The notes: generated by a model not told the origin, from the sequence alone. A stretch of 64,000 nucleotides of DNA from Selaginella moellendorffii (GCF_000143415.4 NW_003314287.1:1750951-1814950); one strand, 5' to 3'; numbered from the stretch's first letter, positions 13,149 to 53,737 are shown. A program made the numbers and translations.

Positions 13149-13595
13149 TTATAAATTACAAGTTGAAAATAATGATTTGGATGAGTTTATATTTGATTTT
13201 GTATCTAGAAGTTCATCCCTTGCATGCTCCACTCGTAAAGACATAGACCCATCAAGTAAAGTGAGTATGCTTCCTGGGTCATAATAACTAAGACATGTAT
13301 TCCATATATCTGTAACAGCTTCTGTAAAGTCATTAAATGTTGATTGGTGGTTCCATCCAATTTGAAGGAAGCAACCCAAAGTTCCAACTCTTGCAGTATA
13401 AAATCCAGATGCATATGAACTCTGTACAAAATTATTCCATACCATAGTTACGCATCTACAATATTCCTCAGGATTTGTTGCTCTTCTAAAAGTTCTAATG
13501 CATGTTTGAAAGGATTCATTGCAGGAGTAAGAGTGGGCTACTCTACAACAAATAAATAAAAGATATATAAATACAAGAGATTTCCAGAATTTCAT
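13149..13595 (-). CDS. Small secreted cysteine-rich protein of unknown family (148 aa), copy 1
   Basis: Intronless ORF from ATG 13595 (MKFWKSLVFIYLLFICCRVAHS-YS) with a hydrophobic signal peptide. Clear paralogs at 25794, 33193 and 53291. TATAAA ~35 nt upstream. Confidence 0.85.
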   Translation of the reverse strand: MKFWKSLVFIYLLFICCRVAHSYSCNESFQTCIRTFRRATNPEEYCRCVTMVWNNFVQSSYASGFYTARVGTLGCFLQIGWNHQSTFNDFTEAVTDIWNTCLSYYDPGSILTLLDGSMSLRVEHARDELLDTKSNINSSKSLFSTCNL

Positions 13596-14070
13596 ATTCT
13601 CACTAATAATTTTTATGGAATGCTTTGGGTTTATAAGATCCAAACAGAATAAAACAAAAACACATTAATAATTTCTAATGATAGACAATAATAAGCGTAT
13701 ATTCTTGTTTGTAGTTTTTGGAAAAATTATACTAGCTAAAATTTATAAACCAGATGAACTTCCTCAACACAAACAACCTCACAAGAGATATTAAAAGGTA
13801 GATGCAAACTTTGTCTCTCCTACTGACTCAACAAAAACACGACCGTCGATCACAATCCACACCAACCGAGCCCTCGAGAATCCTGGCGATGAGCACGGCG
13901 TCGATGTTCTGGTGGTCCAATCTAGCTTGGGTAATGTACAATTGTATTTCAATACAACAAAATTTCCTCTCTAAGTTTGCAGCAGCCCCCCTCCATCTTA
14001 TTACACTTCCTCGTGGAAATGGCAAAGAATCGCTCTCCTCCTTTTTGCTAACTTTTACCTCCCAAAGCGT

Positions 14071-15158
14071 TCAAGCTTGGGCCGAACGAGTCAAAAAGTC
14101 GTTGACGGCGAGGTTAGCATCGCCATGAGCAACCGCGTCTTCTGGTTCCGGCATGAATAAGGTGGCAGCGCTTGCCTGTGAAATAGAGGGAAAAACAAAC
14201 ATTGCAATAAATCAGAAAGTGAATCTCTACAAAATCTCTCATCGACAGTACCTTTGCATCGAATTGCCGCTCAGAACTAGCGCTGTCCACGACAACTTGC
14301 CCGCCATGAGCTTTCACCCATTCTTCGCACTCGTCGAGCACATCCTTGTCAGCCTGTGCTCCATTTGTGAATCCCAGCATCCGAGCTATCACTTCCAGAG
14401 GTAACGTCGGCCTGTACGACCGAGACATACACCTCAGGGCTTCAAAACGCATCCTCTCCACGTAAAGATCTGCCATATTACTTTCGCGTGAGCACCGCTT
14501 TTCTAAACTTCGAAGAGAAGAGGTCTTTACCCATCAAATAGAAGTTGAGATTTGGAGCCGTTTTGTATAGCCGGAAGAACATGATGTAGTTTCCCAGGGC
14601 CACGGCACCACGCACGGCTAAAGAGTGCTTAACTGCCTCGTCTTCTCGGGCCTCTGGTGTCAGCCTGTTACGTGGGAAAAAGGTCACTGGAGTTTCTAAA
14701 CTACTTATAGGACATACCTTGCTATTGATGACAAAAGATCTCGGTTACTTCCATTCTGGAAAATAATATACAACAAGCTGTACGCGGTGAATTCGTTACA
14801 GCAACCGGAAATCCCCTCGGAGTAAAGAGTCTTTAGCTGTGTTTGGCACTGAAACCAGCAAGAAAGGATCAATGGCCAGACAAACTACAAAGCAGAATGT
14901 ATACCTGATTGTATTCTGCCAGGTCACCTGCTTCTAATGCTGCTCGAGCATGAACTTCGTACACCTGTATTATATATTAGCAGTTGCAAAAAGAAAGAAA
15001 TAAAAAATTAAATCAACCTGGACAGTGAGTTCATTCCGTATTCTCTATACCGTAAGATCTTGTCTAATTGACTTTAGCTGCTCGCACTTGTAGAAATAGT
15101 TTTTGGATGTCGACTCCACCATTTTCAAAGCCTTCGTAAGTACCTCTTCCGGTCTCAC
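14071..15158 (-). pseudogene. 5'-truncated SAC3A (SAC3/GANP) duplicate with a nonsense mutation
   Basis: Only the 3' exons are present; homology ends at ~15194, inside an intron. Codon CAG in TVQRIR is TAG here (A at 15047 versus G in the intact copy). Confidence 0.85.
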
Positions 15159-15739
15159 CTAAACAAACAAGCTCATCAGCACGAGAACTTACAATATAAC
15201 TTACACTACGATCATGGATGGACTCCTCCATGCTTGGCTCCATGGGCCACCCCTTTTGAAGTTAGCACCTTCAACTAGGGAATTTGTTCCCCTGACTTGC
15301 CACTCTCGCTTAGCAAGTCATCCAACCAATGTAACATGGTTTCATGCATAAGCGTGAAAGTCCTTTACCATCGACTTTCGTTCAAAGTCATCCCTTTGAA
15401 AACTCGGGAACTACTTCCCCAACCTTGATAGCACTGCCTTATGGCAAACTTCAAGACCACGCTTTTGCTACACCACTCTGATTTCACGCGTTCTATGAAC
15501 CATTTACACTTAGCTTTCTAGTTACTATGCTACCTAGAATTGTCTTTGGAAACCTTGAAGGAACTTTGTCCTTTAGCTTGCTAAGGCCTCTCCTTTTGCA
15601 AGCTTTTTAATTGCTATATGATTTAGCATGGATAATTTCATACTTTAGACTTTCTACCATGCTTTAACAAGTATTCTTAAGGATGAACCTACCCGATAGC
15701 CTAGGGAGTGGTTTCTCAATTCGGGTATACTCACCTTAT

Positions 15740-16761: not shown

Positions 16762-18564
16762 TGTGAAACACAAAATCCCTAGGCCCCAAAGTGGAGCCAG
16801 AAGGGCGCCACGTGGTAGTGGCCGAAGCGAAAGCCAAACAAGCATAACACGTTTGGACTAAAAGCTCCAACTTGATAGGTCGAGAGCGGGAGTGGAACTC
16901 CCAACAAAGTGCTCGAGGAATGAGCACGAAGCGAGCAATAAGCAAGGCTCTAAAAAGGGACCCGAGATGGAGTCTGAGATGGAGTCCGAGATGGAGTCCG
17001 AGACGGAGTCCGAGATGGACCCGAGACGGAGTCCGAGATGGACCGAGACGGAGTCCGAGACGGAGTCCGAGATGGAGTCCTAGACGGAGTCCAAGATGGA
17101 GTCCAAGACGGAGTCCGAGATGGACCTGAGACGGAGTCCGAGATGGACCTGAGACGGAGTCCGAGATGGACCTGAGATGGAGTCCGAGATGGAGTCCGAG
17201 ACGGAGTCCGAGATGGACCCGAGACGGAGTCTGAGATGGACCGAAACGGAGTCCGAGATGGAGTCCAAGATGGACCCGAGATGGAGTCCGAGATGGACCG
17301 AGATGGAGTCCGAGATGGAGTCCGAGATGAAGTCCGAGAAGGACCCGAGATGGAGTCCGAGGTCGAGACCGGGACCGAGATCGAGATTGGGACCGAGACC
17401 AAGGCCGAGACCGAGACCGGGACCGAGGCCGAGACCGAGGCCAAGGCCAAGGCCGAGACCGAGCCCGAGCTCGAGTCCGAGTCTGAGTCCGAGTCCGAGT
17501 CCGAGTCCGAGTCCGAGTTTGAGTCTGAGAGGGTGAAAGCCCTAAGCGTTCGTCTCCCAGACCCTGGGGGGTTTGGTGAGCTCCAAAAGTATAGTAAGGG
17601 GAGGACTGCAGTGGAGCCAGTTTGGCTAGGAAAGGCTAGTTTGGCTAGGAAAGGCCAGTTTGGCCAGGAAAGGCCAGTTTGGCCTAGGAAAGCCAGACCC
17701 AGTGTTGGGTGATGAACTGACCACTGGGAAGTCCAAGACTAGAGTGAATACAGACCAACAAGCGGGGTAGCTTGGTGAAGTGTTCAAGAGCTAGCTCTAG
17801 TTCCCCCGGGAGATCGACTGGTCGATGCTCCCAGTCCAAGTGTGGGTGGCACTACCTACTTGGATACCTGGCGTGGCTCAACAGAACCTCGCTCTAAGCC
17901 CATGGCTAGAGCACCCAAAGGCGGAAAGCGGGGAGAGTACCCACGAGGCTCGCATAAGGCGACAGTGTTCCGAAATGTTGTCCCAAAGTCCCAAACTATA
18001 GAATGGAAGAGGAGTAATCCTCTAGTGTGGTGACCAAGGATACAATCATGTGGTGAGAAAGTCCCAGAGGACCATGGGACTTAGTGGTCGGGCTTGTGGG
18101 CCTTGATCTAGTGGCATTGTTGGCGAATATGGCCATGGACTGAAAAGGGACTTGGTAGGAACTGATAAAGGGATATTGGGGAAGGCTATTCCCCATGTCT
18201 GTGGGCATCCTAAGGATGTTAAGGAGTGGATCTAGGATTATCACTCGTGGATGGATGTCCCAATCCTTGAGAGACGGGACTGCGATGCAGGTGGTGTTAA
18301 ACCATCGGTGTGACCAAGGTGAATGGGCATGGCTTTAGCGTAACGGGCTGATATGTCGGTGGTACCTTGGGGTGTCGGTCATGGGATTAGACACGTGGAG
18401 CACTAGGACCAAGTGCAATGGTGGAGTGGCATGGTTGCCATTCTTGGGGCTAATAAGTCCCTAAGTCCAGAATAGGACTTATGGAGGTTGTGAGTGAGAC
18501 TCCTCCAAGTGGTTGAAGGTGTGGTTAAGTGACTAAAGTAGAATGGAAAATTTAGTTGTTTACA
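16762..18564 (+). mobile_element. Solo LTR, family A, inserted into its own family's internal region
   Basis: TGTGAAACAC...TTTACA with perfect TSD GTTGC. The empty site TTAGTTGCCTCATAG is at ~2844-2858. Minisatellite at ~16958-17530. Confidence 0.92.
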
Positions 18565-22800: not shown

Positions 22801-24350
22801 CTTTCGCACTTCCTTTAGTCTAATTCAAGAAAAGTTTATGAGAGAGCACGGCAATGACTACTTGAACCAATAGACTAATCCCTATAGTCTTGATTGATCC
22901 ACTTATAATCATGCCTAGGAAGAATCCACTAGTGTCGTGCTAAACATCTACGGACCAGCCTATTTGCCACTTATAGCAAACCCAGGGAAGGTTTACTTTC
23001 ACCCACGGTACATGGAACAACTCATGGAACTACCAATAGGCTAACATTAATCCTGCCAACTCAAAGTGTAACCTCGAGTTTCTAGTGTGCCTCACTCACG
23101 AGCCCAAGCGCAAACTCGTATAAAACGGTACACCTCAAACCCATCATATGAGCACAAGAGCAAGCTCACATCATAAGGTACAGCAAGGTAACCAAATCCA
23201 TACCCAAGGGACAATTGCAAAGCCTTTGCACCCAAACGTGTACCCACTCGGATCATCATTTTCATCTCTGCATATGCAACGAAACTGTCGCGAATGTGAC
23301 TTTGGGTATCGAAAGTTACCTGTCGGCTAGTCCTTACGGACACTCTTACCTTACTGCCANNNNNNNNNNNNNNNNNNNNNNNNNNNNNNNNNNNNNNNNN
23401 NNNNNNNNNNNNNNNNNNNNNNNNNNNNNNNNNNNNNNNNNNNNNNNNNNNNNNNNNNNCCCAAGCATACAGCCCAAGGAGCGAAGGGACAGGAGCCCGG
23501 AGCGACTTGGAACAGTCCTGGAGCAACTAGCATCCCAATGCCAGGACCAGCACGCAAAACGGAGCCAAATGGAGTTTGGCACTATTTCGGCATACCGGTG
23601 GCCTAACACAAGGATATGGGTACTCCACCAGCTAGCATGGAATAGAACTTGGGCTTAGACCCAAGCCGGACGTAGAACAAGGACAAGCACGCAAGCGGGA
23701 GCTAGACTATGCCTCAAGTTGGTCGGCCATGCCCAACCTGCCCACTATCCCTACTATACATTTGGAACCCCCCACATCCCCCCCCCCCCGAGGGACACAC
23801 GCTTTGGGCTTTCACCCCAAGCCTCCCTTAGTATCAAGAGTTAGTCTCTGGAACAAGCTCAAAACTTACTAAATATGGAATGGCGCTAGATTGCGAATTT
23901 GGACACAGGAGAAACACTATTGTGTTCAAGCCAATCTCTACATTCCGTAGATATGCCAAATGAGCAAATCTGGACACTTTCCATAAATAGCATTTGGGAC
24001 TGAAATGAGACTAACACAAAGGGCATGATAGCAAGGGTGTTTGGCAAACACGGTAAGTTATCATTTAGCGAATATTAAGGGACCAAGCTCAATATCGCAG
24101 GGGTTCCCAACACTAGCAAGTGCAAGTCAACGAATGAGTTTCTCTAACCAGGTCAAGTATGTTTAGGAATTCCTTCCTTATGCTTATCTAGTCAAGTGCA
24201 CACGCGAGGACTAGTTTCTCAACTAGCTTAGGCGGAGACTGATAACAGGTCTAACAATACTGACCTCCTACCGTCGTGGCAGTAAGGAAAGAATATCCAA
24301 AAGGACTGGCCGATAGGTAACTTTAGATACCCAAAGTCACATTCACGACA
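19845..24350. mobile_element. Patchwork of degenerate, probably retroelement-derived fragments containing an assembly gap
   Basis: No intact ORF and strong strand skew. Internal ~150-bp direct repeat (21630-21780 vs 22467-22615). Shares the GCTTTGGGCTTTCACCC motif (~23801) with family A LTRs and ends in ...ACA at 24350. Confidence 0.45.
23360..23459. other. Assembly gap (100 N)
   Basis: Run of N. Confidence 0.99.
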
Positions 24351-25088
24351 GCACTGCCGTGGACGGAGTGGGATTTAGTAAAGACCGAAGAGGGATATTG
24401 GGGAAAGGTGTTCTCCATATCTTTGGGCATCCTAAGGATGCTAAAATGTGGTTATGAGATAACCATTCATGGATGAATGGCCTAGTCTTTAGTTGACAGA
24501 TTTGTGGTACATGTGGTTTTGGACTATTAATGAACAAAGGCAAATAGACATAACCTTAGAGTAATAAGCTAACATGTCAATAGTACTTTGGATGTCTATG
24601 AAATTAGACACATGAAACATTTGGACCAAGTGTAAAAAATAGAGTGGTGTTGAGGCAACCCATGGAGATAGTAAATCCTTAAGTTGAGAATAGAATTTAT
24701 AAAGGTTGTGAATGAAACTCTTCCAAATGGCTAAAGGTGTGGTTAAATGATTAAAGTAGAATAGAAAAATTAATCGCTTACACTAAAGGCCCAACTACTA
24801 AGTCTCACTAATCTTTGGGACTGTTGACTATATTACCAAGCAAAATGGCCTCTAGATTAGTAAGGAGAGGCATCTATCAAGGCATTGAGATGGCATCATA
24901 GAGAGCATCAAGGTATGGATTGCAAATATGGAGTTGAATTTCCCTAACACCATGTCAACTCTAGGATGAACAATCTAACACTTAGTTCTTTATGAGTAAG
25001 CTTTTTAGGATAAAATTACATAAAATTTATTAATATCATTATTTTCCATTATTTCTAACTTAAGAATTATTTATAGAAATTAAAAGAA

Positions 25089-25449
25089 NNNNNNNNNNNN
25101 NNNNNNNNNNNNNNNNNNNNNNNNNNNNNNNNNNNNNNNNNNNNNNNNNNNNNNNNNNNNNNNNNNNNNNNNNNNNNNNNNNNNNNNNNNNNNNNNNNNN
25201 NNNNNNNNNNNNNNNNNNNNNNNNNNNNNNNNNNNNNNNNNNNNNNNNNNNNNNNNNNNNNNNNNNNNNNNNNNNNNNNNNNNNNNNNNNNNNNNNNNNN
25301 NNNNNNNNNNNNNNNNNNNNNNNNNNNNNNNNNNNNNNNNNNNNNNNNNNNNNNNNNNNNNNNNNNNNNNNNNNNNNNNNNNNNNNNNNNNNNNNNNNNN
25401 NNNNNNNNNNNNNNNNNNNNNNNNNNNNNNNNNNNNNNNNNNNNNNNNN
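25089..25449. other. Assembly gap (361 N)
   Basis: Run of N; corresponds to 12446-12806 of duplicate copy A. Confidence 0.99.
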
Positions 25450-25793
25450 ATTACTTAATTTTTAAAATAAGAAAAAAAATTAATTTTTTTAATGATTTTA
25501 TAGTTGATAATGAGACTTCTTTTAAATCTCATTCCATGAATTTGAAGAAAGCATAATAAATTATTATTGAAGATATTAATAACACTCTTCAAAATATATC
25601 AATTATATATTGTAATATATAGTACAAGATTTGTAAACAGTTTTTAAGTTAAAATAATGAAATTATAAAAAACTAATATAATAATAATAAGTAAATAAAA
25701 GTGAATTATTTTTTATCAATATTTCTAGTTCTTACTTTTTCATATATATATATATATATATAATTTGAGAAATATAAATTTGATAAATATATT

Positions 25794-26240
25794 TTATAAA
25801 TTACAAGTTGAAAATAATGATTTGGATGAGTTTATATTTGATTTTGTATCTAGAAGTTCATCCCTTGCATGCTCCACTCGTAAAGACATGGACCCATCAA
25901 GTAAAGTGAGTATGCTTCCTGGGTCATAATAACTAAGACATGTATTCCATATATCTGTAACAGCTTCTGTAAAGTCATTAAATGTTGATTGGTGGTTCCA
26001 TCCAATTTGAAGGAAGCAACCCAAAGTTCCAACTCTTGCAGTATAAAATCCAGATGCATATGAACTCTGTACAAAATTATTCCATACCATAGTTACGCAT
26101 CTACAATATTCCTCAGGATTTGTTGCTCTTCTAAAAGTTCTAATGCATGTTTGAAAGGATTCATTGCAGGAGTAAGAGTGGGCTACTCTACAACAAATAA
26201 ATAAAAGATATATAAATACAAGAGATTTCCAGAATTTCAT
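25794..26240 (-). CDS. Small secreted cysteine-rich protein of unknown family (148 aa), copy 2
   Basis: Protein identical to copy 1; one synonymous substitution seen (TCT/TCC). Confidence 0.85.
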   Translation of the reverse strand: MKFWKSLVFIYLLFICCRVAHSYSCNESFQTCIRTFRRATNPEEYCRCVTMVWNNFVQSSYASGFYTARVGTLGCFLQIGWNHQSTFNDFTEAVTDIWNTCLSYYDPGSILTLLDGSMSLRVEHARDELLDTKSNINSSKSLFSTCNL

Positions 26241-26715
26241 ATTCTCACTAATAATTTTTATGGAATGCTTTGGGTTTATAAGATCCAAACAGAATAAAAC
26301 AAAAACACATTAATAATTTCTAATGATAGACAATAATAAGCGTATATTCTTGTTTGTAGTTTTTGGAAAAATTATACTAGCTAAAATTTATAAACCAGAT
26401 GAACTTCCTCAACACAAACAACCTCACAAGAGATATTAAAAGGTAGATGCAAACTTTGTCTCTCCTACTGACTCAACAAAAACACGACCGTCGATCACAA
26501 TCCACACCAACCGAGCCCTCGAGAATCCTGGCGATGAGCACGGCGTCGATGTTCTGGTGGTCCAATCTAGCTTGGGTAATGTACAATTGTATTTCAATAC
26601 AACAAAATTTCCTCTCTAAGTTTGCAGCAGCCCCCCTCCATCTTATTACACTTCCTCGTGGAAATGGCAAAGAATCGCTCTCCTCCTTTTTGCTAACTTT
26701 TACCTCCCAAAGCGT

Positions 26716-29700
26716 TCAAGCTTGGGCCGAACGAGTCAAAAAGTCGTTGACGGCGAGGTTAGCATCGCCATGAGCAACCGCGTCTTCTGGTTCCGGCATG
26801 AATAAGGTGGCAGCGCTTGCCTGTGAAATAGAGGGAAAAACAAACATTGCAATAAATCAGAAAGTGAATCTCTACAAAATCTCTCATCGACAGTACCTTT
26901 GCATCGAATTGCCGCTCAGAACTAGCGCTGTCCACGACAACTTGCCCGCCATGAGCTTTCACCCATTCTTCGCACTCGTCGAGCACATCCTTGTCAGCCT
27001 GTGCTCCATTTGTGAATCCCAGCGTCCGAGCTATCACTTCCAGAGGTAACGTCGGCCTGTACGACCGAGACATACACCTCAGGGCTTCAAAACGCATCCT
27101 CTCCACGTAAAGATCTGCCATATTACTTTCGCGTGAGCACCGCTTTTCTAAACTTCGAAGAGAAGAGGTCTTTACCCATCAAATAGAAGTTGAGATTTGG
27201 AGCCGTTTTGTATAGCCGGAAGAACATGATGTAGTTTCCCAGGGCCACGGCACCACGCACGGCTAAAGAGTGCTTAACTGCCTCGTCTTCTCGGGCCTCT
27301 GGTGTCAGCCTGTTACGTGGGAAAAAGGTCACTGGAGTTTCTAAACTACTTATAGGACATACCTTGCTATTGATGACAAAAGATCTCGGTTACTTCCATT
27401 CTGGAAAATAATATACAACAAGCTGTACGCGGTGAATTCGTTACAGCAACCGGAAATCCCCTCGGAGTAAAGAGTCTTTAGCTGTGTTTGGCACTGAAAC
27501 CAGCAAGAAAGGATCAATGGCCAGACAAACTACAAAGCAGAATGTATACCTGATTGTATTCTGCCAGGTCACCTGCTTCTAATGCTGCTCGAGCATGAAC
27601 TTCGTACACCTGTATTATATATTAGCAGTTGCAAAAAGAAAGAAATAAAAAATTAAATCAACCTGGACAGTGAGTTCATTCCGTATTCTCTGTACCGTAA
27701 GATCTTGTCTAATTGACTTTAGCTGCTCGCACTTGTAGAAATAGTTTTTGGATGTCGACTCCACCATTTTCAAAGCCTTCGTAAGTACCTCTTCCGGTCT
27801 CACCTAAACAAACAAGCTCGTCAGCACGAGAACTTACAAAAGACCTGAGCTTACAGTTGCTGGGTCAGGAGCAGAGGTCAATCGTAAGTAGCGTTTCTCA
27901 ATTTCCTGACACGTCCCTTTAATCGTCAATGAGTCCCAGTCGATGTCCTCCACAGCCTGTCCATTCCCATCTCCACAGCTTAGAGCAATCTTCAATGCAG
28001 AGGCTCTTCTGTTACTCGCACTGCCACCCCGACCTTTCACAAAACTTTTCACAACCGTGGCGCCACCCTTGCAGTTTTCAAACCGTTTAGACCTTGTCTG
28101 ACGCCTCTTATTCTCCTCAGGATTTTGAGTTGGTATGGTTCCTAAAGTAACTCCGACCAGCTCAGGGACCTCTTTGTCCTCGCCTGACGCATCTGAATCT
28201 TCGTTCAATATCGACTTCCGCGGCCTCTTTCCATTAGGCTTCGTTTTATCCAGCAAGTTTTTCTGCTCCACCTGTTGGCCTTGCACCTGGACTTGCGGTA
28301 TCTGTCCCTGTATTTGCTGTGGCTGTGGCTGTGGCTGTTGCGGAATTTGAGGATGTTGCAGTGGCTGGAAACCCTTTGGCTTGTTGGCCCACGGACTATC
28401 CCGTTTTACCCAGCTCATGGATCCAACCTGTAAGACTCCGTAAGAAACTTCGAGTAGCTGCTTTTAACACTTACGGAACTAGTTTGTTGGTTTAGAAGAA
28501 GGGCCTTTCCCATATCCTTCTGAATATTGCTGAGGTTGGCATCATTATTCGGCGTCGCGGGTTCCCATCTGCTCCTGGTCTTTTTGACCGTGAAGGGTTG
28601 GTCCCTGTACCCAGATAAGTTAGAAAAGAAAAACAACGTACTTCAATCAATATACCCCTTTCCGTCCCCTGTTACACCCGGTAGAGGAAACAGTGGTTCC
28701 GTGTCCCAGTTCTTTGTAAATAGCGTACCATCAGATGATGCTTTCGTAATTATCTGCAAGTAACAGAGATTTCATATCATGCATGCAGAAAGACTTAAAA
28801 GTGATACACTTACCTCCTTCATCATCTGCTGGCATACCCCTTTCTGAGCCTCGTTCTTGCATCGCGCCAAAGCTCTTTCAACGTATGCACGCAAGGAAGG
28901 AGGAAACATCCCAGGCTAGAGCAAGAACAAAGGAAGCGGCTCAGAGCAAAATAAAAAGCCATAAATAACCACCTTAAGTGCCGCATTCGACACATCAGCT
29001 GTGAAGGATTTTCCAGAAGAGACTTTACCGGCAACACTGACATATGCTGGTGTTTGCGGTAGTGTTTGCGGCATTCTTGGATTCATTTGTATCTGAGGCA
29101 GCCAGCCAATGGTAAATAACCATCATCAACCCGTGACCAAATCAGTATACAGACCTTCACCGGGGACTTGAACAGATTTGTTTGCTGAGAGTATGGCTGC
29201 TGCAACGGCCGCACTGACTGTTGGTATGTGTTGGGCTGGCTAGCAGTCGGAGGAACATACTGAGGATGTCCGTTTGTCGCCGAGTTTCCCTGCAGCAAAA
29301 CAAAGAAACACAATTACAAAACTGCGAACAAAAACTATACACGCACCTGAGATGGCCATGCCGGTGGAGGCTGAGTACCAGGAGGCGGCGGCTGCGTCGT
29401 TTGAGAGTATCCCTGGGCAACCACACTGGCGTACGACGAAGGAGGAGGGGCTTGATGAGTCGCGCTAGCTGGAGCAGCTGCCTCAGTCCCTGGAGGGCCA
29501 CTAGTCTCAGTAGCCTGTTGCATGCTCGCATAGTAGTCCCCTGGCTTTTGATACTGTGTCTGGTATGTCCCAGCTGCGCTTGGAGCCGAGTATCCTGGAT
29601 AGCTTGGATAGTAGCTGCTGCCGGCACTGGTGGCGGCCACGTTGTTGCTGGCGTCGCTCCAGCCATTGTAAGCAGCAGCCTGATAGCTTCCCGTTTGCTG

Positions 29701-34337: not shown

Positions 34338-37300
34338 CTAGCAATTGCCCAGCAAATGCTGGGTGGTTGGCAAATTTGATGCCATTTGAAAAGGTTTTCT
34401 GAGCTTAGCTATGTTTGCTGTTTGATCGACTTCACAATTGAAAGACATTCTCATAACCAAATGTGTTATGAGCATTATATAAGCTAGATTAGATAACTGT
34501 TGACTTGCATTCCTCCATTTTGAACACAAAAAGCCCAAAGAATACTTCCAAGTCCATCTTTGGTGCAAGTGTTGGTACTTGCTCCTCAGCCTGCTAGAGA
34601 GGTTCCTGGGATGAGCCAGAAACTATTATATTGCAATGAGAGCTACACTCAAAAAGCAATAGGATGAAAATTGTACCTCTGCCATTAGCAACTAAATAGT
34701 ACATGCCATAACCAAAATGGGACAGCACCCAAGGCACACCAGTCAATGCCAGCTTTATTGTGGTGTGCACTTGAAACTCACAACCGCAAGTCAAGGGTGG
34801 CTGAGTAGATAGCTTTCTGGAATCATGGTTAGATTTAGAATTGTGCCATGTTTTTGTCAGTCTACTTAAGAATTTCAGCATAAACTGTATTCACAGTGTA
34901 AAAGTGTTGATCATGTGGTATAAGATTGCCTTGAAAGGGGGTTGCAAGCACTTGAACATGAAGTTGTTCAGGTGATCTACACCTTGACAGAGCAACATAA
35001 AGTTGACCATGTGTGAAAACAGGTTGGGGGAGGTAAATGCCAACACGGTCGAAAATTTGGTCTTGGGCTTTAGAAATAGTTAAGCAATAACCCAGACAAA
35101 CTGGGAATTGTCTTCGAGACATCTTGAAAAGGATTTCAACATCAGAAGGTGTAAGGGTAATACGTGGAATAAAAACTCGCGATCCCTTGAATTGTCCTGT
35201 GATAATTTCACAATCTAAAACGTTTTGAGATGCTTGCTTGAGAATGAGGTGAGTGCCATTGCATAAACCAATTTGCGGAGATATGTTCCTAAGAAGAATC
35301 AAAATCACATTTTGTTTTAGAATTAATTTGTGTGGTAGTAGTCCCGATGGGGTGATTGAATTTAAGAATTCAATTGGGAACTCTTCAAGGTGATCTGAGT
35401 CAACCGTGTCAATGCTCAAATAAACATATGGATCACCTAGTAGTCTTTCAACAATGTCATTATTTATTCTGAATGTGTCATCATTGAGTGGGGTGAGAAT
35501 AACCTTTGATGCAGCTGTATAAGTATTTATAATATCATTGGTATTTGGAAAAACAAAGTTTACAATAGGTGTAGTGATAGATAATGCATGTGGTATTTTG
35601 ATAATATCTGGTGGGAGACATGGCAACTGCAAACTACTATCACCATTGCCAAGTTTGAGAAGCCATTCAGAAAAACAAAGATTGCTTGAACGCATGTTCT
35701 TTGTTAGTGTTAGTGTTGTAAAGAGTGACCATAGTCTATTCATTTTAACTGAGCTTGAAATAATAGGGGTTTTATGGCCATGGGGAACAACAAGAAGGGT
35801 TTGACGAAAGTCACCACTTGTAATCACTATAACGCCTCCAAATGGTTTAGAATTACATTTGAGATGTTTTAAACATGTATCAACCACAGAGAAAGCATGT
35901 GTATGAACCATACTAATTTCATCCCATATGAGAACATTTGCTTGTTTGATGGTTTTTCCAGCATCACTATTAATTGTTAAAGCAGAGACAGAAGTTTCAT
36001 TTAAAGGAACAGGAAGTTTAAAAGTCATATGTGCCGTTTGACCATATTTTAGCAAAATGCTTGCAATCCCAGTCCATGCCATATTGATTACTTTTTTTTT
36101 AATAATTGTAATGCTATAATGATGGTATTAAGTAGAAAAGTTTTTCCAGTACCACCAGGTCCATCAATAAAGAAACATTGATGCTGGTTAGTATCAATAG
36201 CATTTATAATGAGTTCAAAAATATAACGTTGTTCATAACTGAATTGATTTATGTTTGCATTTATTTGGTCTTGTGATGGGTCAGGGATCTCTATATTAAG
36301 CATGTGTTTGATAATGGGAGTAAGAGTTGGGAGTGGTAAACCAAAATCACAATTAGATTTATTGTGTAGTTGGAATTTTGAATTAATATCGACTAAAGCA
36401 ATGTCAAAATAGTTTATATCATTTCTAGCATAATCCTCAGACATATCAATTTTGAATTGATCCCATAATAGATTTGGATCTTTTGGTGAACAATACAAAC
36501 AAATAAAAATAAATAACTGTCTTAATTGGGATGGCATTTTAAAAGTAGAAGCTTCTTGCATGCAGTGTTGCTATTCTGAATCATCTGCTAAAAGTCCCAT
36601 TGCCATAGCTGCTTGTTTAAAAGATGAGAAAGTAACACCTTCGACAGTACGTATATCCTCAAATGATATAGCACCTTTTTTATAGAGTAATATAAGCCGT
36701 AAGTGGTACAACTCATTATTAGAAGGAGATATGAAATACATTCTTGGTATGAGTTTAGCTTTTCATTGGCATAATTGCCATTTATGAGAGGATTTGTTAT
36801 ATGTGTAATGTAATGGAATTTGAGCATATGTATATTGCCTTGCATTAGTATCTTGCATGTTTAAATTGAACCATTGTGTAAGCATTGTTCCATTTTGAAT
36901 GGCTCTTTCTAGTGCTTCTTGTTCATGACCTGGTCTGAAATAAACGTTTTGAAAATTGGGTAAATGAACTAGAAGGTGTATAATAGTTAGTGATTTATCA
37001 TGCATGTGAAACTTAAATATATGCCACATGGCTTTAGGAGCAAAAATATATCGAGCATTGACAAAACTTGAGATTTTGTCCCAATTTAAAGTCCTTCGTT
37101 CTTCAGATGCAGTTAGGAATTCTAATGTTGCACAGTCATAACCTTTGTATATATATTGAAATAAATATTTAATACTTTTAATAGAAGCGCAGATCTCTAC
37201 ATTGATGTGTGCTTGATATTTTTTATAAAGGTATTTATTATAAGGAACAACCCATCTGTTGTCAATACTACAACCATTTTTTATGAAAGTGCGTCTGTTA

Positions 37301-40010
37301 TTGGGCCGGTAGTAATCAGGATAACCATCAATACAATAAATGGTTTCAACATTAAATTCTTTTGGATAATTCTTAGAGCATTTGTTAATTTCCATGCAAA
37401 GGCTTCTAGGATTTAAATTACCACATGGACCATGTATCATATGATTTATAATTATGTTATGCAATTCTGGTTCTAACAGTGGGTGTGGCAACTGTGCAGT
37501 GACAAATTCATCAACTGAGTCTCGATTTCTTATCTTATCTTCGCTTGATAACATTGCTAAGAAATGACAATGAGGCAAATCTCTTTTCTGGAATTCAATA
37601 ACATAAACATATGCGATGCACTTCCCAAAAATTCCTTTGATACTTATGTCATGTAGGAATTCTTTAAGCTTTAAGTTGAAAACTCTTGAAATAAGATTAG
37701 GTCGATCCTCAAGTGATTCATTCAGCTGTAAGTTTTGCACAATTTCAGGCCACTTTGGGTTGTATGTAAATGTAATAAATAAGTCAGGTTTTCCAAAATG
37801 TGTGACAATAGCAATAGCATCTTGATAATGTTGTTGCATTGCTCGTGGGCTACCAGGAAATGTAGAAGGAAAAATTACAAATTTTCCAGGTTCAGCATTA
37901 TTAGTAGCAGCTCTGTTGCTAACATAGTCCATAAGACCTGTGTAGTAATCCACTTTTAAGTGTTTTTGATAAATGCGAAAGAAATTAAGGTTGTTAGATT
38001 CAACCTTTACATAAACATCAACTATAAATTGTTGAGTGAGTTTCCCAGCATGTAGCAATTGATCATAAAGGAAAGAGTTGCCAATGCTATTTCGTTGAGA
38101 CAATCGATATGCATAGTACTGAAGTAGCGTTACATGCGACTCATTGTTATAGATTTTTTCATGCCAACCTTTATCACCAAATGGTAAAAGTAAAGGATAA
38201 ACCATAGGATCACAATTTTCATTAAGAATAGAGATTTTTATTGGCTGTGAGTTATATGGATGTATGCATATTTCTCTGTCAAGAGATGGCTCACCCTCAT
38301 CAATAGCGAAAACAATAGCAACATCATTAGTTTGTGGCAAATTATAACGATGTAGATTAGTACTTTCACTTCTAACAATCATGTAAACACCACGTTTTGG
38401 GGTTCCATTGCAAATTGAGCGATGTTGTTCTTGTGATTCAAGATTATACATCATTTGAAAAGCTTGTGCATACGGGTTTATTATTCTTAGCAAGTTATCT
38501 AATTGTAATAATAAATTAGAATCACAATTTGTGTTGAATGGGTTTTGCTTTCTAATATTTGTAGCCTCAAAAACATCAAGTATGTAAAGTTGTCCATATG
38601 ATGGTGGCACGTTAGCAGCAGGATATGCTAAAGCAATTTTGTGATAAATTTGACCATGTATTCTAAAGCAATATAGGCCTTTACCACTTAAATTATTAAT
38701 ATTAGCACCCATTGATGCAAAAGCCAAAGCACTGTTGAAATTTCTTATGTTAATTTTAAAATTGGAGTTTCTATTTTCATTAAAAAGCATACGCAATATA
38801 GTAGGTAAAGATGAAAGCTGGGGAAGGGAAACCTTTCCATTCTGGCAGCACATTGATTTTGGCTCATTTTCAAAATGTAATGCACCACAAAAGACACATA
38901 CGAATGACATATTTCCAATATTAAACAGTTGTATTGTATGGTCATTATAATTCTTTTGATGTGCTAATTTATAGATAGTATAACTGTGATGATTACATGT
39001 ATTTGTATTAGTTTCATTAGCATTTTCAAGGTTTATATTTGTATGACCTTCATCAGCATATGCTATGTTTGTATTAGCATTGTCAAGATTTGAAGTAATT
39101 TTTGCATTAGCATGTTCAAGGTCTAGATTAGTTTCTTCATTACCATTTGCAAGGTTGTTGTGAATATGATTATATGTGCTAGTGTCAATAGTTGGAGGCA
39201 AATGGTGACGTATGCCTCTTAATACTTCGTGAAGCTGAGGCATATTTGCTAGGGATGATAAATGAGATGAAATAACCTATCTAGTGTCAAAGCACTTATC
39301 TTAAAATTTTCAAAGATTCTAAGTAAAAGCCAGAACTCGCCTTCTTCTTACACTGGAAAAAAAATTTTAAAAAAATAAAAAACGAAGACTATACAATGAG
39401 AGCACAATCTGTACACACCTTAATCTGTAAACAAAAGAAACTAATCTAGCAACCAATAAAACCTAGACACAGGACTGGCACACCTTTTCCAGGGCGTGGT
39501 GAGCAACTGTGAGAGGTGGGGTTTGCAAGTTAGAGAACTCACCTTGGGCTTGTTCTCTCTTGCAAAAGGACAGCGACTACAAACTCTTTGATAGTTCTGG
39601 CTGTGAAGGCTGGCTCTGGCTTCAGCTCTGCCACTGGATAGCATCCACAAACCCAAATGAAGACGTTTCAAATTTTCACAGCACACAAAAATCCAAATTG
39701 TTGGGGTTGGGGGCCAAATTAGCGGCTGCCGGGCTGATGGTGAACACAGACCTTTGCAGGTGCCACTGATCGGGCAAGCAAGCGTTAGCTCAATTGTGGC
39801 AGGGCATCCAGGGCGAGCTAAGAAGAACGGGCACGGGGGCAGGACACCACTGGCACACGTGTCGGTGTGCCTTCTTCTCCCGCCCCACGCGGCTTGGCCG
39901 CCTCCCATTGGCCGGGAGCAAACATCAGAAAAATTTCTCGCGCAACCAAAAGCCCGGGCCTGGGATCCAACGGCCAGTGAGCCTCCCCACTATCGCTTTA
40001 TATGTATAGA
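34338..40010 (-). mobile_element. Full-length Helitron (~5.67 kb)
   Basis: The minus-strand 5' end TCTATACATATAAA is at 40010. The 3' end CTAG is at 34338-34341, with the hairpin CCCAGCA-AA-TGCTGGG at 34348-34363. Inserted between A and T with no TSD; encloses RepHel. Confidence 0.92.
34862..39243 (-). pseudogene. Helitron RepHel (HUH Rep + PIF1 helicase) broken into several ORFs
   Basis: Rep motifs GKPDLFITFT, VIEFQKRDLPHCH and KYLFQYIYKG. Helicase motifs GPGGTGKT, DEISM, GDFRQ and HGQLYVALSR. Breaks at ~36763, ~36565 and ~36088 (T run). Confidence 0.9.
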
Positions 40011-42709
40011 TATTATTATGTCAAGTTAAAAAATTTATCATTACTAAATCATTATCAAGTTAAGCAGAGTATCAAAATTTTTTGACAAATTTTATAAGGA
40101 ATCATTAATCATAGCAACTAATAATCACTTTTTCAACTTGCCATCATAACACTCAAACACTACATACCCTTTAGCTATATACTTGTCCTAGATAACAATA
40201 TATAGGAATATGGACAAAATAATGACTCAAATCTAGTTGTACAAAAACCAACTAACTATTTTAGATTAGTTATAATGAATATACTGATTAGGATTTCATT
40301 CTATGAAATATATATTATATAATTTATTCTTATTCTGATGTTATCACTAAATGGGAATATTACTATTTAAATTTTCATTGTATTATAAATATCAATATAA
40401 CTTATGGAAATGAAGAATTAAGCCGTATGGACAAGACATATAATGTAGTAAATTATAATTTGAATATTACAAAATATTATATTTTAATATATATACCTTG
40501 TTATTTGGTGGGAATTAAACTTGAGGGTGAGTGTGAGATATGCCTTTTAAAGAGTTATCAAACAATAACAATAATAGGCATAATTGGACTACCATAAAGT
40601 TAAAATAGAAAAGAAATAGTTTTCAAATTTTCCATTATACCATCTTTATTTAAATATATATATATATATATTCTATTTAGAGGATTATATAGAGAGAATA
40701 TGTTTTATTTACAATGAAACTATTGAATAATATAGTGTGTGACAAAGCTTGTACTAAATAGAATTTGTTGTTATAAAATCACATGTAGCACCAACATCAT
40801 ATTTATATAACTACAGAAAAAAAATTTATTGAAGAAACAAAGTGATAATAAATTTTATCATTTCTGCCTCTTCAAAAACTTAGGTAATGAGGTAATGCTA
40901 GATGGGTGTTAGGCTGTTAGGTGGGTAGTGTGCTAGGTGGGCAAGTGCATTGTTCGGTGGGCAATGAAAGCATTGAAACAAAAATGAAGAGACTGAAAGT
41001 GGAACTTGGATTAGAATCCCTGTAGATGAAAACTATGAGAAACACAGAAACACAAATGCTATAATTAAAAAGGAAAAGAAATGCATACCAAGTTCAAATC
41101 CAAGATTGATGCTTGAGAAGTGTTGGAAGATTTCCAACCTCAACACTCGGATGATAGGGTTTATCATGATAAGGCTAGTAATACAAATCACGAAAAACAA
41201 AGCTAAGTTGGTTGTTGTAAGAACTTCAGGTGGCATTTAAGCCATCTATTAATTAAATTATTATGTGAACTCTATGTCTTTATTATGGACTTTTACATGA
41301 AGTATGGTGGCTGAGGCTCAAGTGGTATTTAATAAAGCTGAAAAAGAAATTCCTTGCTAGTTTTATTGGACTCCATGATCCTTTATAGATCAACAAATAA
41401 ATGAGGCTTAGAATTTTTTAAATAAAATGAAGACTGTTTTTAAATCATTGAGAAAGAGGTAATTGTAATGATCATGGAGTTGAAATAAGAAATACGTTGA
41501 TTTTAACATGTTAAAATTCAAACAAGTTCATACAAAGTTAAAATATATTAATTTCTCATATGATACAGGTAATTACACATAATTTTGTGGCAAACTATCA
41601 GAAACCTAGCTTAGGATGTCATCACATGGGCCTTTTTCCCCCAAAAATGTGACTTCTGCCAAGTCAAAATGTTTAGATGTTACTGTTAACAAAAGTAGTA
41701 TTTAAGCACAATTGTAACCCTTATTTTATCATTTCTAGTTGGTAAATCGCACTCGTCTTCTTCACAGCCTGTTTTGGGAGCGTTGAAGGACTACTTGCAC
41801 CACACTGCTGCAACCCTGCAAAATTCGACTACTTCGACAATCACCAAACGCAGGTGGGTACCACGAAGGCTAAGAAAGATGTCGACATGGAACGGCCGAG
41901 AAAGAGAGCCAAGAAGCAGCAGCAGCCGGATGGAAGCAAGCCGGGTGGCGAGAATGCAAAGCTTCCTGTGGTGAGTCAAAACCCTATCTTGGTCAACGAC
42001 GACAAAACGTTGAGTCTCGAGAGTATGGAATTGCTCATGGAGACACAGCTCCAGCAGGTGTCGCACCGATGAGGGTCTCAAGGATTTCAACGTGGATGAT
42101 GGTGATGACAGCGATCTTTTGTTGGGTCTTAAGAAGAGGTTTTGCCAAGCAGCCAATCGATCAAGAATCTGCTCCTGTTGCGGTTGTGGAGGAAGAAAAT
42201 GAGTTTGCTTTGAAGGAATTGAACAAGAAATTGCAGCAGCAAAGGAGCAAAGGATGCTTCTTTGAAGGGAAGAGGTGAGGAAGATCAAGTTTAGAGATGA
42301 CCTGGTTCTCACCACAAAACACGGCAGAGCACAAAATCTTGTGTGCTGATCAGATGAAGAACTTCTATCAAAATCAATAGACAACTCAATTTGTTTCGAG
42401 TTTTAAGCAGAAGCAACTATTCTACTATAAAAATCAACAAATCAATAGAACAAAGGATTGTTCTTTAGAGTTTTAAAGAATTTCCTTCCAAACATGAGCA
42501 TCACCATTGTTGTCAATCAGAGAAAACAATGAAAACACAAGTTAGATTTCTCCAGTTAGAATCACGGGAGGAGCAAAACAATCCACCATTTTCACTGATT
42601 CATCACCACACCAGGAGCGGCGCCGCCTTAGCTAAACATACCTCCATTATTCCCAAAACGTAGCTCGATCAAATCCGATCTCTCCCTATTTCTTTCCTTC
42701 TACCAGCTG

Positions 42710-51254: not shown

Positions 51255-52450
51255 ATGTCCCAAAGATTAACTCTTGGGACTAGAGTGAAAGCCCAAAGCA
51301 TGCCCAAAGGGTTAAAATATTGGTCCATTAAAATTATGTTAGACATCATCTGATATTGTTTTATATATAGATGTTGGGTATAAAGAGCTGGTAATTATAA
51401 GGCATTTAAGTGCATATCATTTCATAGTGGAGTTTACTTCCAAATTCAAGTGCACTATATTTAGGATCAAATGAATTGTCTTAGTAATTCATATTTAACT
51501 TTTGTCAGAGTTTTTGACTTTAGTTGTATATGTAGAAACTTTTCTAGTAAATTTGAAATGATATATGTAAGATTAGTTGGATTGCACCATTCAGTAAAAA
51601 TGTTATATGTATATTTGGTTATTGATAGAAGCATGTATGCAGTTGATGAGATGGCAAAATGAAACTATGCTAATGATGTTCAGAATTTTTAAACGAGTGA
51701 ATCAAGAGGAAGAAACTTCTATTGGAGATATTACAAAAAAAACTAAGATTGAGTCAAAAGAGGAAGAGTTTGGGCACGATGCTATACTGTAGTATACAAT
51801 TCAAAATATTGAGTTTGATAATTTGCAAAAGAAAATTCACAAATTAAAGAAGAAGAACAAAAAGAGGAAGAGAGAAGCAAAAACAACTAAAGTAGTTACA
51901 TGCAAAAAACCAAATTCCTTTTCAAATTTTGAAAATGAGTTTTAAAGTTTAAGCCCTCAAAACCACTCAATTTTATAAGCATATCTGACAATCAAGTTTT
52001 AGAAGACTTGGTCTACAATATGGAAAACCATTTTATAATAGCAAACATAAATAATTGTAAGAGATTACTTACATGCAATCCTTTTTTATCGATCATACCA
52101 AAACTTAGTGGTGTGCACTATAAAAGGGTAGGCTTTTTATGTCGATCATCATTTAGATTCAATATATGCAAATAAAGCTTATGAGATTCATTAAGGAATT
52201 AGTGCTTGCATTAATTATGAGAAAAGTTTGAAGATAATAACTCATCTCCTCTTCTTCCTCATATTCTAAATTAACTAATTCATCAACCCCTTCAGTTTCA
52301 CCACCACTGTCTTCCCTCATGACATTAATACAATATCTCATCTTATGCTTGTTAGGATATTTTAAATACCTATATCCTACCTCTTTATAATGGAAGCAAT
52401 AATGCATATTACCTATTTTGCTAAGAGCAAGTTTTGCAGGTTATTGCTAC
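51255..52450. mobile_element. Highly degenerate retroelement remnant in an AT-rich tract
   Basis: GTGAAAGCCCAAAGC motif shared with family A LTRs (~51285). A decayed zinc-knuckle-like stretch (YCFHYKEVGY..LKYP) followed by an acidic spacer lies on the minus strand at 52159-52407. Confidence 0.4.
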
Positions 52451-53290
52451 TTGTACCCATTAGAAGGAATAGACGGCCTAAAATAGTGGCAATCACCGTG
52501 AAATGATAAAACTAATAGTATATATAATCCTTAAGCTTCTCATGGAAGAAATTTAGTTGGATGCAAAGATTGGTAACAAGAGTAAGAAGAGTTACACTAT
52601 GTGTTGTGAATATCACAATTAACTATATTTAATTGTTTAGTTGTAACCACATAGCATTGAGTAAATTCACTAATTGTTACTCAAAAGTCAAACAAAAAAA
52701 GAGTATATTACTTTGCCATGAAGATGAAAAAAAGAAGAAAAAAAACATAAGAGCATACATAGAAAAAGTACAAAAATAAAAGAGATAATGCAAAAGCTAA
52801 ATCTAAACCAAAAGCATAAATCCAAATGCTCCTTATAGACAATCAAAGTTACCTTTCAATTTCATATATAAAAATATGTATAGTCGATTAACTTAAAAAC
52901 CCTTGTTTATATACAAAAATAAATTTAAACCACTTTGATGGCTATCAAAATCCCACTATGTTAATTATAGCATTGTATTAATACACTTGGACCTCATAAA
53001 CAAGAATTTTAATATGCATAGTAAAATCTACATGAAGTCATAAATATACAACACAAAATCATAAGTGATGACCAATTGAACACTAACCATGCACTACCCT
53101 TCTTGCCTTAGGTAATATGAATATTTTACATCATACATAAATTTGGAATGTTTTTTTTTATGAAATCACTATCTTAAGTTTCATAATTGAAAATATTATT
53201 GTATGCAAGAGATATGTGAGCCCTAATTCAAATGCTTTTATTTCAATTATTTTAAATTTTATTTTATCTTGTTTGTCATTTCCTGTAAAT

Positions 53291-53737
53291 TTAACAAACA
53301 GTAAATAATATTAATGAAATATTTGTATATGAAATTGTCTCTAGAAGACCTTCCCTTTCATGCTCCACTCTTAATTCCATGGAGGCATCATCTAGTGAAA
53401 TTACACCTCCCTGGTCATAATATGCAAGACATGTATCCCATATATCAGTAGCAGCTTCTAAAAAGTCAGAATATGATAGTTCGTGATAATGTCTAATTCG
53501 AAAGAAGCAACCTAAAGTTCCAACTTGAGCAGTATATATCCCTGGTGTAAATGGATTAGATTCAAAATTATTCCATACAGATGATAAACACCTGCAAAAA
53601 TCATTAGGATTGGTTCCTATTTGAAATGATCGAATGCAACTTTGTACAGAACCAGCTGAGTAGGAGTGGGTTTGTTTACAATAACTAAAAATGAGCATAC
53701 CAATAAATAAAAAACTAAAAGATTGCAGAAAATCCAT
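53291..53737 (-). CDS. Small secreted cysteine-rich protein of unknown family (148 aa), copy 4
   Basis: ATG 53737 (MDFLQSFSFLFIGMLIFSYCKQTHS-YS). Same conserved motifs and six mature Cys; TATAAA at 53774-53779 (minus). Confidence 0.85.
   Translation of the reverse strand: MDFLQSFSFLFIGMLIFSYCKQTHSYSAGSVQSCIRSFQIGTNPNDFCRCLSSVWNNFESNPFTPGIYTAQVGTLGCFFRIRHYHELSYSDFLEAATDIWDTCLAYYDQGGVISLDDASMELRVEHEREGLLETISYTNISLILFTVC

Follow-up and report, generated by a model that had tools for sequence, protein, structure and literature searches.

A Selaginella-restricted family of secreted six-cysteine proteins with a predicted Gnk2/DUF26-like fold

A 64-kb stretch of the genome of the spikemoss Selaginella moellendorffii (scaffold GL377591.1; hereafter the window, to which coordinates refer unless another scaffold is named) holds four intact reading frames, all without annotation in the source assembly, which are best explained as members of a real, lineage-specific family of secreted proteins, restricted to Selaginella and orphan in sequence. 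On balance, and with only a slight lean, we read them as real genes whose products share a Gnk2/DUF26-like fold and have a binding role in the apoplast. The protein would be secreted to the apoplast and there, by analogy with Gnk2 and with the fungal lectins of the same fold, might bind a carbohydrate or another surface molecule of a second cell; the same analogy suggests that this cell could be either a microbe, in a defence role, or a partner cell, in signalling or reproduction.

Reading frames and family members

Copy 3 is read from the plus strand and the other three copies from the minus strand, and translation gives complete products of 148, 148, 147 and 148 aa with continuous frames. 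Copy 1 (13149-13595, minus) consists of 148 codons and a stop; its predicted signal peptide covers residues 1-22 (13530-13595) and the mature protein has 126 residues and seven Cys, one beyond the six that are invariant in the family. Copy 2 (25794-26240, minus) differs from it by a single synonymous change (G at 25890, A at 13245). Copy 3 (33193-33636, plus), with 147 codons and a stop, has a predicted signal peptide at 33193-33258 and a mature part of 125 residues with six Cys; copy 4 (53291-53737, minus), with 148 codons and a stop, has a predicted signal peptide of residues 1-25 (53663-53737) and 123 mature residues, again with six Cys. A preliminary description of the window had reported, with no indication of strand, four copies encoding 147-148 aa proteins; all four ORFs are indeed intact, but copies 1 and 2 are one and the same protein, and this protein carries the extra Cys.

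The three distinct paralogs are 52-57% identical in pairs, with gaps of only 1-3 residues, in agreement with the earlier impression of roughly half-identical, almost gapless sequences, and all indels among them are in-frame. The alignment also bears out the other features described at that stage: signal peptides ending at an HS/YS junction, six invariant Cys, the VWNNF, VGTLGCF and LRVEH motifs common to the family, and a C-terminal N-x-S sequon, found in 4/4 copies. The mature Cys spacing is 13, 1, 26, 25, 44. The predicted signal peptides have an h-region hydropathy of 2.6-3.3 and small residues at -3/-1, consistent with the secreted appearance claimed for them; the stop codon stands directly 3' of the domain, and there is no other domain or membrane anchor. 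Judged from sequence, the signal-peptide features and the even, conserved Cys set are those of generic secreted cysteine-rich plant proteins, and the mature products are best explained as small (about 14 kDa), acidic and disulfide-stabilised.

Copies 1 and 2 are carried by two duplicated segments of about 3.5 kb (11703-15194 and 24350-27839), which are 96-99.7% identical (96.2% and 99.67%; 8 differences in 2.39 kb). The first contains copy 1 together with a truncated 3' part of a SAC3/GANP gene; the second contains copy 2, is broken by an assembly gap of 361 N (25089-25449) and runs into the full, expressed SAC3/GANP gene. This gap ends 345 nt 3' of the copy 2 stop codon, and its counterpart beside copy 1 (12446-12806) is continuous, very AT-rich sequence; the other gap, of 100 N (23360-23459), is 2.3 kb away from the nearest family ORF. 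Both N runs are outside the family genes, and no family ORF crosses or abuts either of them. A comparison with RNA reads, made to see whether the duplication reflects mis-assembled haplotypes, found neither of the copy 1-specific variants (27024, 27692) among the heterozygous sites of the reads and none of the RNA variants in copy 1; for the neighbouring PPR protein, a homologue search found no allelic protein of a second haplotype on record.

An exhaustive HMM search of 1.84 billion protein representatives gave one true match, a S. moellendorffii paralog; three other matches were rejected, since these proteins were repetitive or of low complexity and the matches to them were broken into many short stretches. 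An intact distant paralog on another scaffold of the same species (L001:12155-12586) is 35% identical, has its own signal peptide and the shared motifs, and has lost one of the six Cys; its GC3 is 0.51 and it is set among ordinary genes in GC-normal DNA. A frameshifted relic on that same scaffold (L001:6928-7195) is a broken member of the family, and tblastn found no further copies within the 64-kb window. The near-identical duplicate, the three old paralogs, the distant intact paralog and the broken copy show a history of birth and death. Pfam gave no match to the full-length or mature proteins of any paralog, nor did a profile search of PDB sequences; neither copy 1 nor the 4-sequence alignment retrieved a relative in word-based searches, and literature searches found no description of this six-cysteine family. 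The lack of Pfam and PDB sequence matches, together with its absence from a searched collection of 15 billion proteins and the lack of annotation, upholds the claim of an unrecognised family. The reference annotation of this model lycophyte gains four missing genes, and one that had been mis-merged into EFJ30363.1.

Selection, expression and genomic setting

Selection has kept the reading frames open. When neutral evolution by substitution only was simulated up to the 32-35% divergence seen between the nucleotide sequences, the ORF stayed open in 0.04% of cases. NG86 dN/dS is 0.35 between copies 1 and 3 and 0.30 between copies 3 and 4, in both cases lower than in any of the 300 replicates of a neutral simulation that was AT-biased and stop-free (median 0.83); between copies 1 and 4 it is 0.58-0.60, not significantly below this null (p about 0.06-0.08). 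Similarity between paralogs reaches no further than about 60 nt beyond the ORF, thus the coding unit itself is the conserved part. The purifying selection initially proposed finds support in ORF retention beyond chance and in two of the pairs, but not in the third, whose ratio of about 0.6 is indistinguishable from neutral.

The genes appear to be silent in the sampled sporophyte RNA. Over 25450-26449, copy 1/2 has 0 RNA-seq reads in three runs, of which 1.38 Gb each was sampled, and a gene only 200 nt away reaches a depth of 10-75; none of the 31-mers of copy 4 occurs in contigs assembled from 19 putative RNA runs (10 studies). A run designated X1, in which copy 4 is present, was rejected as RNA evidence for copy 4 and taken for DNA, because it has 22 kb contigs and the expressed neighbouring gene is missing from it. 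If the genes are used, their expression would be restricted by stage, tissue or stress; RNA data of this kind often show no expression of cysteine-rich peptide genes that are active at particular stages. Missing transcripts combined with a dN/dS near 1 had been named beforehand as an argument against function, and this argument applies in part: no transcripts were found, and one pairwise dN/dS cannot be distinguished from neutral.

The AT-richness noticed earlier is confirmed by a GC3 of 0.19-0.24 in the four ORFs, where the PPR and TAXi-like genes nearby have 0.46-0.58; the nearby Helitron ORFs, at 0.24-0.26, resemble the family. The four copies are scattered among unrelated genes, in either orientation, and the AT-rich islands around them are crowded with remnants of transposons; one such remnant in the same island is a zinc-knuckle relic, gag-like and decayed.

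An unlikely alternative is that the ORFs are decaying: the family once worked, and the window copies are now silenced, untranscribed relics in methylated, AT-rich, transposon-laden DNA, drifting to AT and still intact through recent loss. Zero RNA reads on copy 1/2 beside a well-expressed gene, the lack of copy 4 in RNA assemblies and a GC3 equal to that of the Helitron ORFs, as opposed to 0.51 in the paralog elsewhere, would all be expected from such decay, as would the neutral-like ratio between copies 1 and 4, the clearly dead copy on the other scaffold and the gag-like relic in the same island. However, three lineages that differ at 32-35% of nucleotides have all kept frame, signal peptide, six Cys and motifs, which would happen in about 4/10,000 per pair if they were neutral; moreover, 2/3 pairs have a dN/dS under every neutral replicate, all indels are in-frame, and the RNA sampled consists of three runs of one study plus assemblies.

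A further explanation, which we consider highly improbable, is that a mobile element or an integrated virus carries these genes as cargo and has moved them around the locus. The Helitron Rep/helicase gene 1.2 kb from copy 3, the Helitron-like codon composition and the scatter of copies in both orientations would agree with it, but a canonical Helitron 3' end (hairpin then CTAG, read by eye) at 34338-34372 places copy 3 beyond the element, at a distance of about 700 nt, and the flanks of copies 1, 2 and 4 are free of other Helitron fragments. Furthermore, homology between copies ends about 60 nt from the ORF, the paralog on the other scaffold lies among ordinary genes in GC-normal DNA, and no structural match was found among viral proteins.

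Predicted fold and the fungal connection

One confident model and the sequence periodicity suggest that the mature domain is a sandwich with the order beta1-alpha1-beta2/beta3 hairpin-alpha2-beta4/beta5 hairpin. The AlphaFold model of copy 3 (mc3369a0864da; pLDDT 79, pTM 0.76, order b-a-b-b-a-b-b) was built from a 4-sequence alignment and is the confident one among five, the other four having a pLDDT of 34-46. The six invariant Cys are placed by this model in beta1, at the start of alpha1 (two), in beta3, at the end of alpha2 and in the C-terminal tail. A full-length copy 1 model, of low confidence (pLDDT 53), has the same order of secondary-structure elements; it gave no DUF26 match (best Z 3.6), and atlas and PDB searches with it produced no usable result.

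Searched against the PDB with Foldseek, the copy 3 model matched DUF26 of PDLP5/PDLP8 (E 6.6e-4 to 3e-3), Gnk2 (7.6e-3) and Zt-KP4 (2e-2). VIA-align gave Z 9.5 with 6grf (rmsd 2.5, 94 aa) and 8.9 with both 6gre and Gnk2 (4xre, 96/108 aa), followed by LDL (7.8), Y3 (7.5), Zt-KP4 (8acx, 6.4, rmsd 3.8, 91 aa) and then unrelated rows at Z <=5.2; KP4 itself (1kpt) scored 4.2. With this tool, models that lack clear relatives commonly reach a top Z of 7-8. In the ESM Atlas a PF01657 cluster was matched with TM 0.64 and rmsd 2.5 over 100 aa. The family fold is thus probably a divergent DUF26/KP4-type, and the sandwich would fall within the type that comprises Gnk2/DUF26, the fungal LDL/Y3 lectins and KP4. 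The preliminary description had set DUF26 aside and proposed a KP4/Ecp2-like fold. Its sequence-based judgement was correct, as the proteins lack the DUF26 motif, but the best structural match is DUF26/Gnk2 (Foldseek E 7e-4); likewise, the confident model does belong to the alpha/beta-sandwich group that contains KP4, but the DUF26/Gnk2 matches are stronger (Z 8.9-9.5 versus 6.4 and 4.2). As for Ecp2/Hce2, that part of the proposal depends on a sub-threshold language-model lead, which was not reproduced with a second paralog.

KP4 proteins (PF09044; KP4 of the Ustilago maydis virus, 1kpt, and Zt-KP4 of Zymoseptoria tritici, 8acx) are also small, secreted and Cys-rich, and their alpha/beta sandwich of five strands and two helices has the same general architecture as the spikemoss model; KP4 genes are reported in mosses. 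Acquisition of a fungal gene of the KP4 or Ecp2/Hce2 killer-toxin/effector type by horizontal transfer, followed by expansion in the lycophyte, seems to us very unlikely all the same. In the language-model search, the closest neighbours of copy 1 were indeed small secreted proteins of fungi: a cluster labelled Hce2 scored 0.85, with 173 features in common, and KP4 clusters scored 0.75; yet these scores are below the 0.9 threshold, only 12% of the 0.85 cluster carries Hce2, and mature copy 3 gave no usable match. Zt-KP4 and KP4 are among the structural matches (Z 6.4 and 4.2), but plant DUF26/Gnk2 matches exceed every fungal one; the family has six invariant Cys, in contrast to ten in KP4, where they form five disulfides, and neither PF09044 nor PF14856 (Hce2/Ecp2) matches its proteins. 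The genes are intronless and of unusual composition, which had been taken to hint at a foreign source; however, the paralog on the other scaffold has a host-like GC3 of 0.51, so that the AT bias is local. No fungal relative was found among the 1.84 billion representatives or in word-based searches, and horizontal acquisition in general is unsupported, as the searches turned up no relative by sequence in fungi, bacteria or viruses. A search of the viral structure library (BFVD) ended without a structural match, a result that speaks against descent from a giant virus or mycovirus.

Comparison with known secreted families

DUF26 is among the largest ectodomain families of plant receptor kinases and underlies the CRK, PDLP and CRRSP families; its fold has two helices packed on a five-stranded antiparallel sheet, and it evolves by tandem, lineage-specific duplication. 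To our knowledge, it is specific to land plants and of unexplained origin, its only outside relatives being fungal lectins recognisable by structure alone. Like the spikemoss family, DUF26/Gnk2 (PF01657; ginkbilobin-2, CRRSPs, PDLP, CRK) is a domain of land plants that is secreted, has about 100 residues and six Cys, and undergoes lineage-specific tandem duplication; the predicted strand and helix order is the same, and it provides the best structural matches to the model (Z 8.9-9.5). Conversely, the PF01657 HMM has no match up to E 10 to full-length or mature proteins of any paralog, and no DUF26 chain appears in the profile search of PDB sequences. The core motif of DUF26 is a conserved C-X8-C-X2-C, and S. 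moellendorffii has known single-domain secreted DUF26 members (PMC6368629). This motif is absent from the spikemoss proteins, as their Cys spacing indicates. Judged from secondary-structure positions, at most one of the three disulfides would be equivalent: the first and fifth DUF26 Cys correspond in the model to the beta1 and alpha2-end Cys, and the other four would tie alpha1, beta3 and the C-terminal tail together, a layout different from that of DUF26. The family further differs by an extra 20-residue C-terminal tail with a Cys at its end, and by the lack of transcripts for its copies in the sampled RNA.

The Gnk2/DUF26 fold includes lectins among its functions; DUF26 is structurally akin to the fungal lectins LDL and Y3, which have its fold and only part of its disulfide pattern (PMC6368629). 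LDL (Lyophyllum decastes, alpha-galactosyl-binding, 4nds) and Y3 (Coprinus comatus, 5v6i) are small, secreted, disulfide-bonded alpha/beta sandwiches, which match the spikemoss model at Z 7.8 and 7.5 over 87-95 residues, and the partial disulfide pattern would be a trait that they share with the spikemoss family. They differ in being fungal and without sequence similarity to it; the comparison covered the overall fold. Unlikely, but worth stating, is the possibility that an ancient split made the family a sister branch of DUF26, or else that it descends independently, in lycophytes, from a lectin-like ancestor shared with fungi, with the fold kept, alternative disulfides and expression only at unsampled stages such as gametophyte or infection. 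If this is true, the family would be a missing comparison point for the origin of DUF26 in land plants. A family from a lycophyte that combines this predicted fold with another disulfide plan and lacks the sequence signature could show how far the scaffold can diverge, and could help to root DUF26. The value of the comparison is limited by the lack of transcripts in the sampled RNA and by a fold derived from one model.

In their genomic behaviour the spikemoss genes resemble the under-predicted plant genes of defensin-like, LURE and EC1 peptides, which are likewise small genes in clusters that annotation has overlooked, evolve fast at an intermediate dN/dS, and are often silent outside reproductive or infected tissue; the spikemoss proteins, however, are larger (about 125 aa when mature) and have a different predicted fold and Cys pattern.

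Family members in the window and on another scaffold

The window holds four ORFs of the family, three on the minus strand (copy 1, 13149-13595; copy 2, 25794-26240; copy 4, 53291-53737) and one on the plus strand (copy 3, 33193-33636); each yields a complete protein on translation, and tblastn found no further copies within the window. Copies 1 and 2 encode an identical protein (copy 1/2). In the alignment, identity among the three distinct paralogs is 52-57%, and the gaps are all short and in-frame. All begin with a hydrophobic stretch that ends HS|YS, and all carry six invariant cysteines as well as the motifs VWNNF, VGTLGCF and LRVEH and a C-terminal N-x-S sequon. Mature lengths are 123-126 aa and pI values 4.5-5.2; the mature part of copy 1/2 contains an additional, seventh Cys. 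Translation and alignment thus bear out the preliminary description of four ORFs with signal peptide, six cysteines and shared motifs, coding for roughly half-identical paralogs.

Copies 1 and 2 share a duplicated segment (11703-15194 and 24350-27839, identity 96-99.7%). Over 2.39 kb its two versions show just eight differences, one of which falls in the ORF and is synonymous; therefore, three independent old family members are present in the window. The segment may be a very recent real duplication or else an assembly artefact. Two runs of N (23360-23459 and 25089-25449) lie outside every ORF, the second ending 345 nt 3' of the copy 2 stop codon. The neighbouring SAC3/GANP gene is also partly included in the duplicate, as a truncated 3' section: the full gene is found at 26450-30650 on the minus strand, and the truncated copy of its 3' exons at 13805-15194, beside copy 1. 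A neighbouring intronless PPR protein occurs exactly once, on scaffold GL377591.1 of S. moellendorffii GCA_000143415.2, and the locus fetched from it is identical to window 20650-42851; the source annotation calls no gene at the copy 3 position, and family proteins are absent from a collection of 15 billion proteins.

Word-based homologue searches returned no relatives. When 1.84 billion representatives were searched exhaustively by profile, a single true relative emerged: the C-terminal part of S. moellendorffii EFJ30363.1. At the DNA level this is a stand-alone intronless ORF at 12155-12586 of L001, a locus on another scaffold (L001 10001-12944 corresponds to GL377575.1:617220-620163). This paralog is 35% identical, keeps five of the six cysteines and starts with a signal peptide of its own that ends LA|YS; the gene model wrongly joins it to kinase-like exons. 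EFJ30363.1, a GenBank model of 554 aa with a protein kinase domain in its name, seems chimeric: its last part is the paralog ORF, which the model leaves by splicing before the end of that ORF. At L001:6928-7195, 5 kb from the paralog ORF, is a relic with a frameshift and an internal deletion. Thus, the family is known only from S. moellendorffii, where it occupies at least two loci and has a birth-and-death history.

Composition and genomic neighbourhood

The family ORFs are more AT-rich than their neighbours, as previously noticed: GC3 is 0.19-0.24 in the four copies, 0.24-0.26 in adjacent Helitron ORFs and 0.46-0.58 in host genes. The genes lie within AT-rich islands (GC 0.11-0.35) that also contain decayed transposon remains. 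GC3 is 0.51 in the other-scaffold paralog; therefore, the AT bias is a property of the location and not of the family, and is no evidence of foreign origin. Transfer from fungi, a form of the horizontal acquisition considered at first, has little support and is very improbable: the sole true relative from the profile search is an S. moellendorffii paralog.

Carriage of the genes as cargo by a transposon or a virus likewise has little support and is very improbable. An autonomous-looking Helitron occupies 34338-41000 on the minus strand and is absent from the source assembly annotation; it has a Rep/Helitron_like_N ORF (36763-39243, minus), a PIF1 helicase split in two (36088-36561 and 34862-36082, minus) and a canonical 3' hairpin followed by CTAG (34338-34372). 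However, copy 3 lies ~700 nt outside this 3' end, and the paralogs lose their resemblance within about 60 nt of the ORFs, both of which argue against transposon cargo.

The AT-rich island of copy 4 also contains an ORF of 82 aa (52159-52407, minus strand) with a degenerate zinc-knuckle-like pattern of the retrotransposon gag type; it looks like what is left of a decayed transposon. Elsewhere, a repeat family has several copies, some direct and some inverted, that are 74-94% identical (4084-8200, 8500-9900 and 16950-18560), with internal tandem low-complexity units that are Ser/Arg/Thr/Pro-rich in translation.

Coding constraint and expression

When AT-rich sequence was substituted neutrally to the observed 32-35% divergence, the frame stayed open in 0.04% of simulations, and the similarity among paralogs is confined almost to the ORFs. 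NG86 dN/dS is 0.35 for copies 1 and 3, 0.30 for copies 3 and 4, and 0.58-0.60 for copies 1/2 and 4, against an AT-biased, stop-free neutral null of 300 replicates with a median of 0.83 and a 5th percentile of 0.56. The first two pairs fall below all replicates, while the third is borderline (p about 0.06-0.08); therefore, constraint on the family ORFs is real but moderate, and the purifying selection initially proposed holds for frame retention and two of the pairs. Moderate constraint is usual for secreted cysteine-rich proteins.

Transcript support was found neither for copies 1/2 in raw reads nor for copy 4 in RNA-run contigs. Sampling of 1.38 Gb of raw reads from each of three RNA-seq runs gave zero reads on 25450-26449, which spans copy 2 and extends to copy 1 by identity; in the same data SAC3/GANP, beginning 200 nt away, is covered to a depth of 10-75, and its 15 introns (45-76 nt) are confirmed. 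No contig of 19 putative RNA runs (10 studies) contains copy 4 words, and the single run in which they occur, X1, was taken for DNA because it has 22 kb contigs and lacks the expressed neighbour. The main alternative, relic status of the window copies after recent silencing, is consistent with this silence and is set against the constraint on the reading frame; it seems unlikely to us. For functional genes, expression may be confined to a stage or stress outside the sampled RNA.

The same reads offer some observations on the neighbouring gene. About 25 sites at 26770-30621 carry a second allele in roughly 50% of RNA reads; along all of SAC3/GANP, the sequenced plants are heterozygous or differ from the reference. 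Variants specific to its truncated copy are absent from the reads. At 26517-26558, about 40-100 reads per run are stacked on 42 nt, with unrelated sequence on both sides and mismatches to the window at positions 26550 and 26552; their probable source is a strongly expressed transcript from another locus that has a short segment in common.

Predicted fold and relation to known families

No sequence match was found in Pfam or PDB, even by profile or with the mature parts alone. AlphaFold modelled full-length copy 1 poorly (pLDDT 53), with no DUF26-type structural match; of five models of the mature copy 3 protein, one reached confident values (pLDDT 79, pTM 0.76) and four had pLDDT 34-46, so that the copy 3 fold derives from a shallow alignment and a single model. 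Both runs gave the order beta-alpha-beta-beta-alpha-beta-beta, with which the sequence is consistent: two amphipathic helices, two hairpins, and turns at G-T-L-G and D-D-x-S.

The best matches of the confident model form a single coherent group. Foldseek ranked the DUF26 domains of PDLP5/PDLP8 first (E 6.6e-4 to 3e-3) and Gnk2 next (7.6e-3), followed by Zt-KP4 (2e-2) and the lectins LDL and Y3. VIA-align, which is independent of Foldseek, gave Z values of 9.5 for 6grf and 8.9 for 6gre and Gnk2, slightly above its stated background of 7-8, then 7.8 for LDL, 7.5 for Y3 and 6.4 for Zt-KP4, with unrelated rows at 5.2 or lower. The KP4-like fold suggested earlier therefore survives in part: Zt-KP4 is among the matches, but DUF26 and Gnk2 rank higher and KP4 itself reaches only 4.2. 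In the ESM Atlas, the match is a PF01657 (DUF26) cluster (TM 0.64, rmsd 2.5 over 100 residues).

The family has been shown to have secretion signals and conserved cysteines, and its frame to be under selection. By analogy with proteins of the fold modelled, the secreted protein might bind a carbohydrate outside the cell or a ligand on a cell surface, in defence or in cell-cell signalling.

Vaattovaara et al. tied the same set of structures to DUF26 (PMC6368629), and a 2025 preprint puts them together as related alpha/beta sandwiches (PMC12637454). The family has neither an HMM match to DUF26 nor its C-X8-C-X2-C motif and, by cysteine position, could have no more than one of its three disulfides; therefore, it is not filed as DUF26, KP4 or Hce2, in agreement with its first description as unplaced, and is described as a new sequence family, probably with a fold of the DUF26/LDL/KP4 type.
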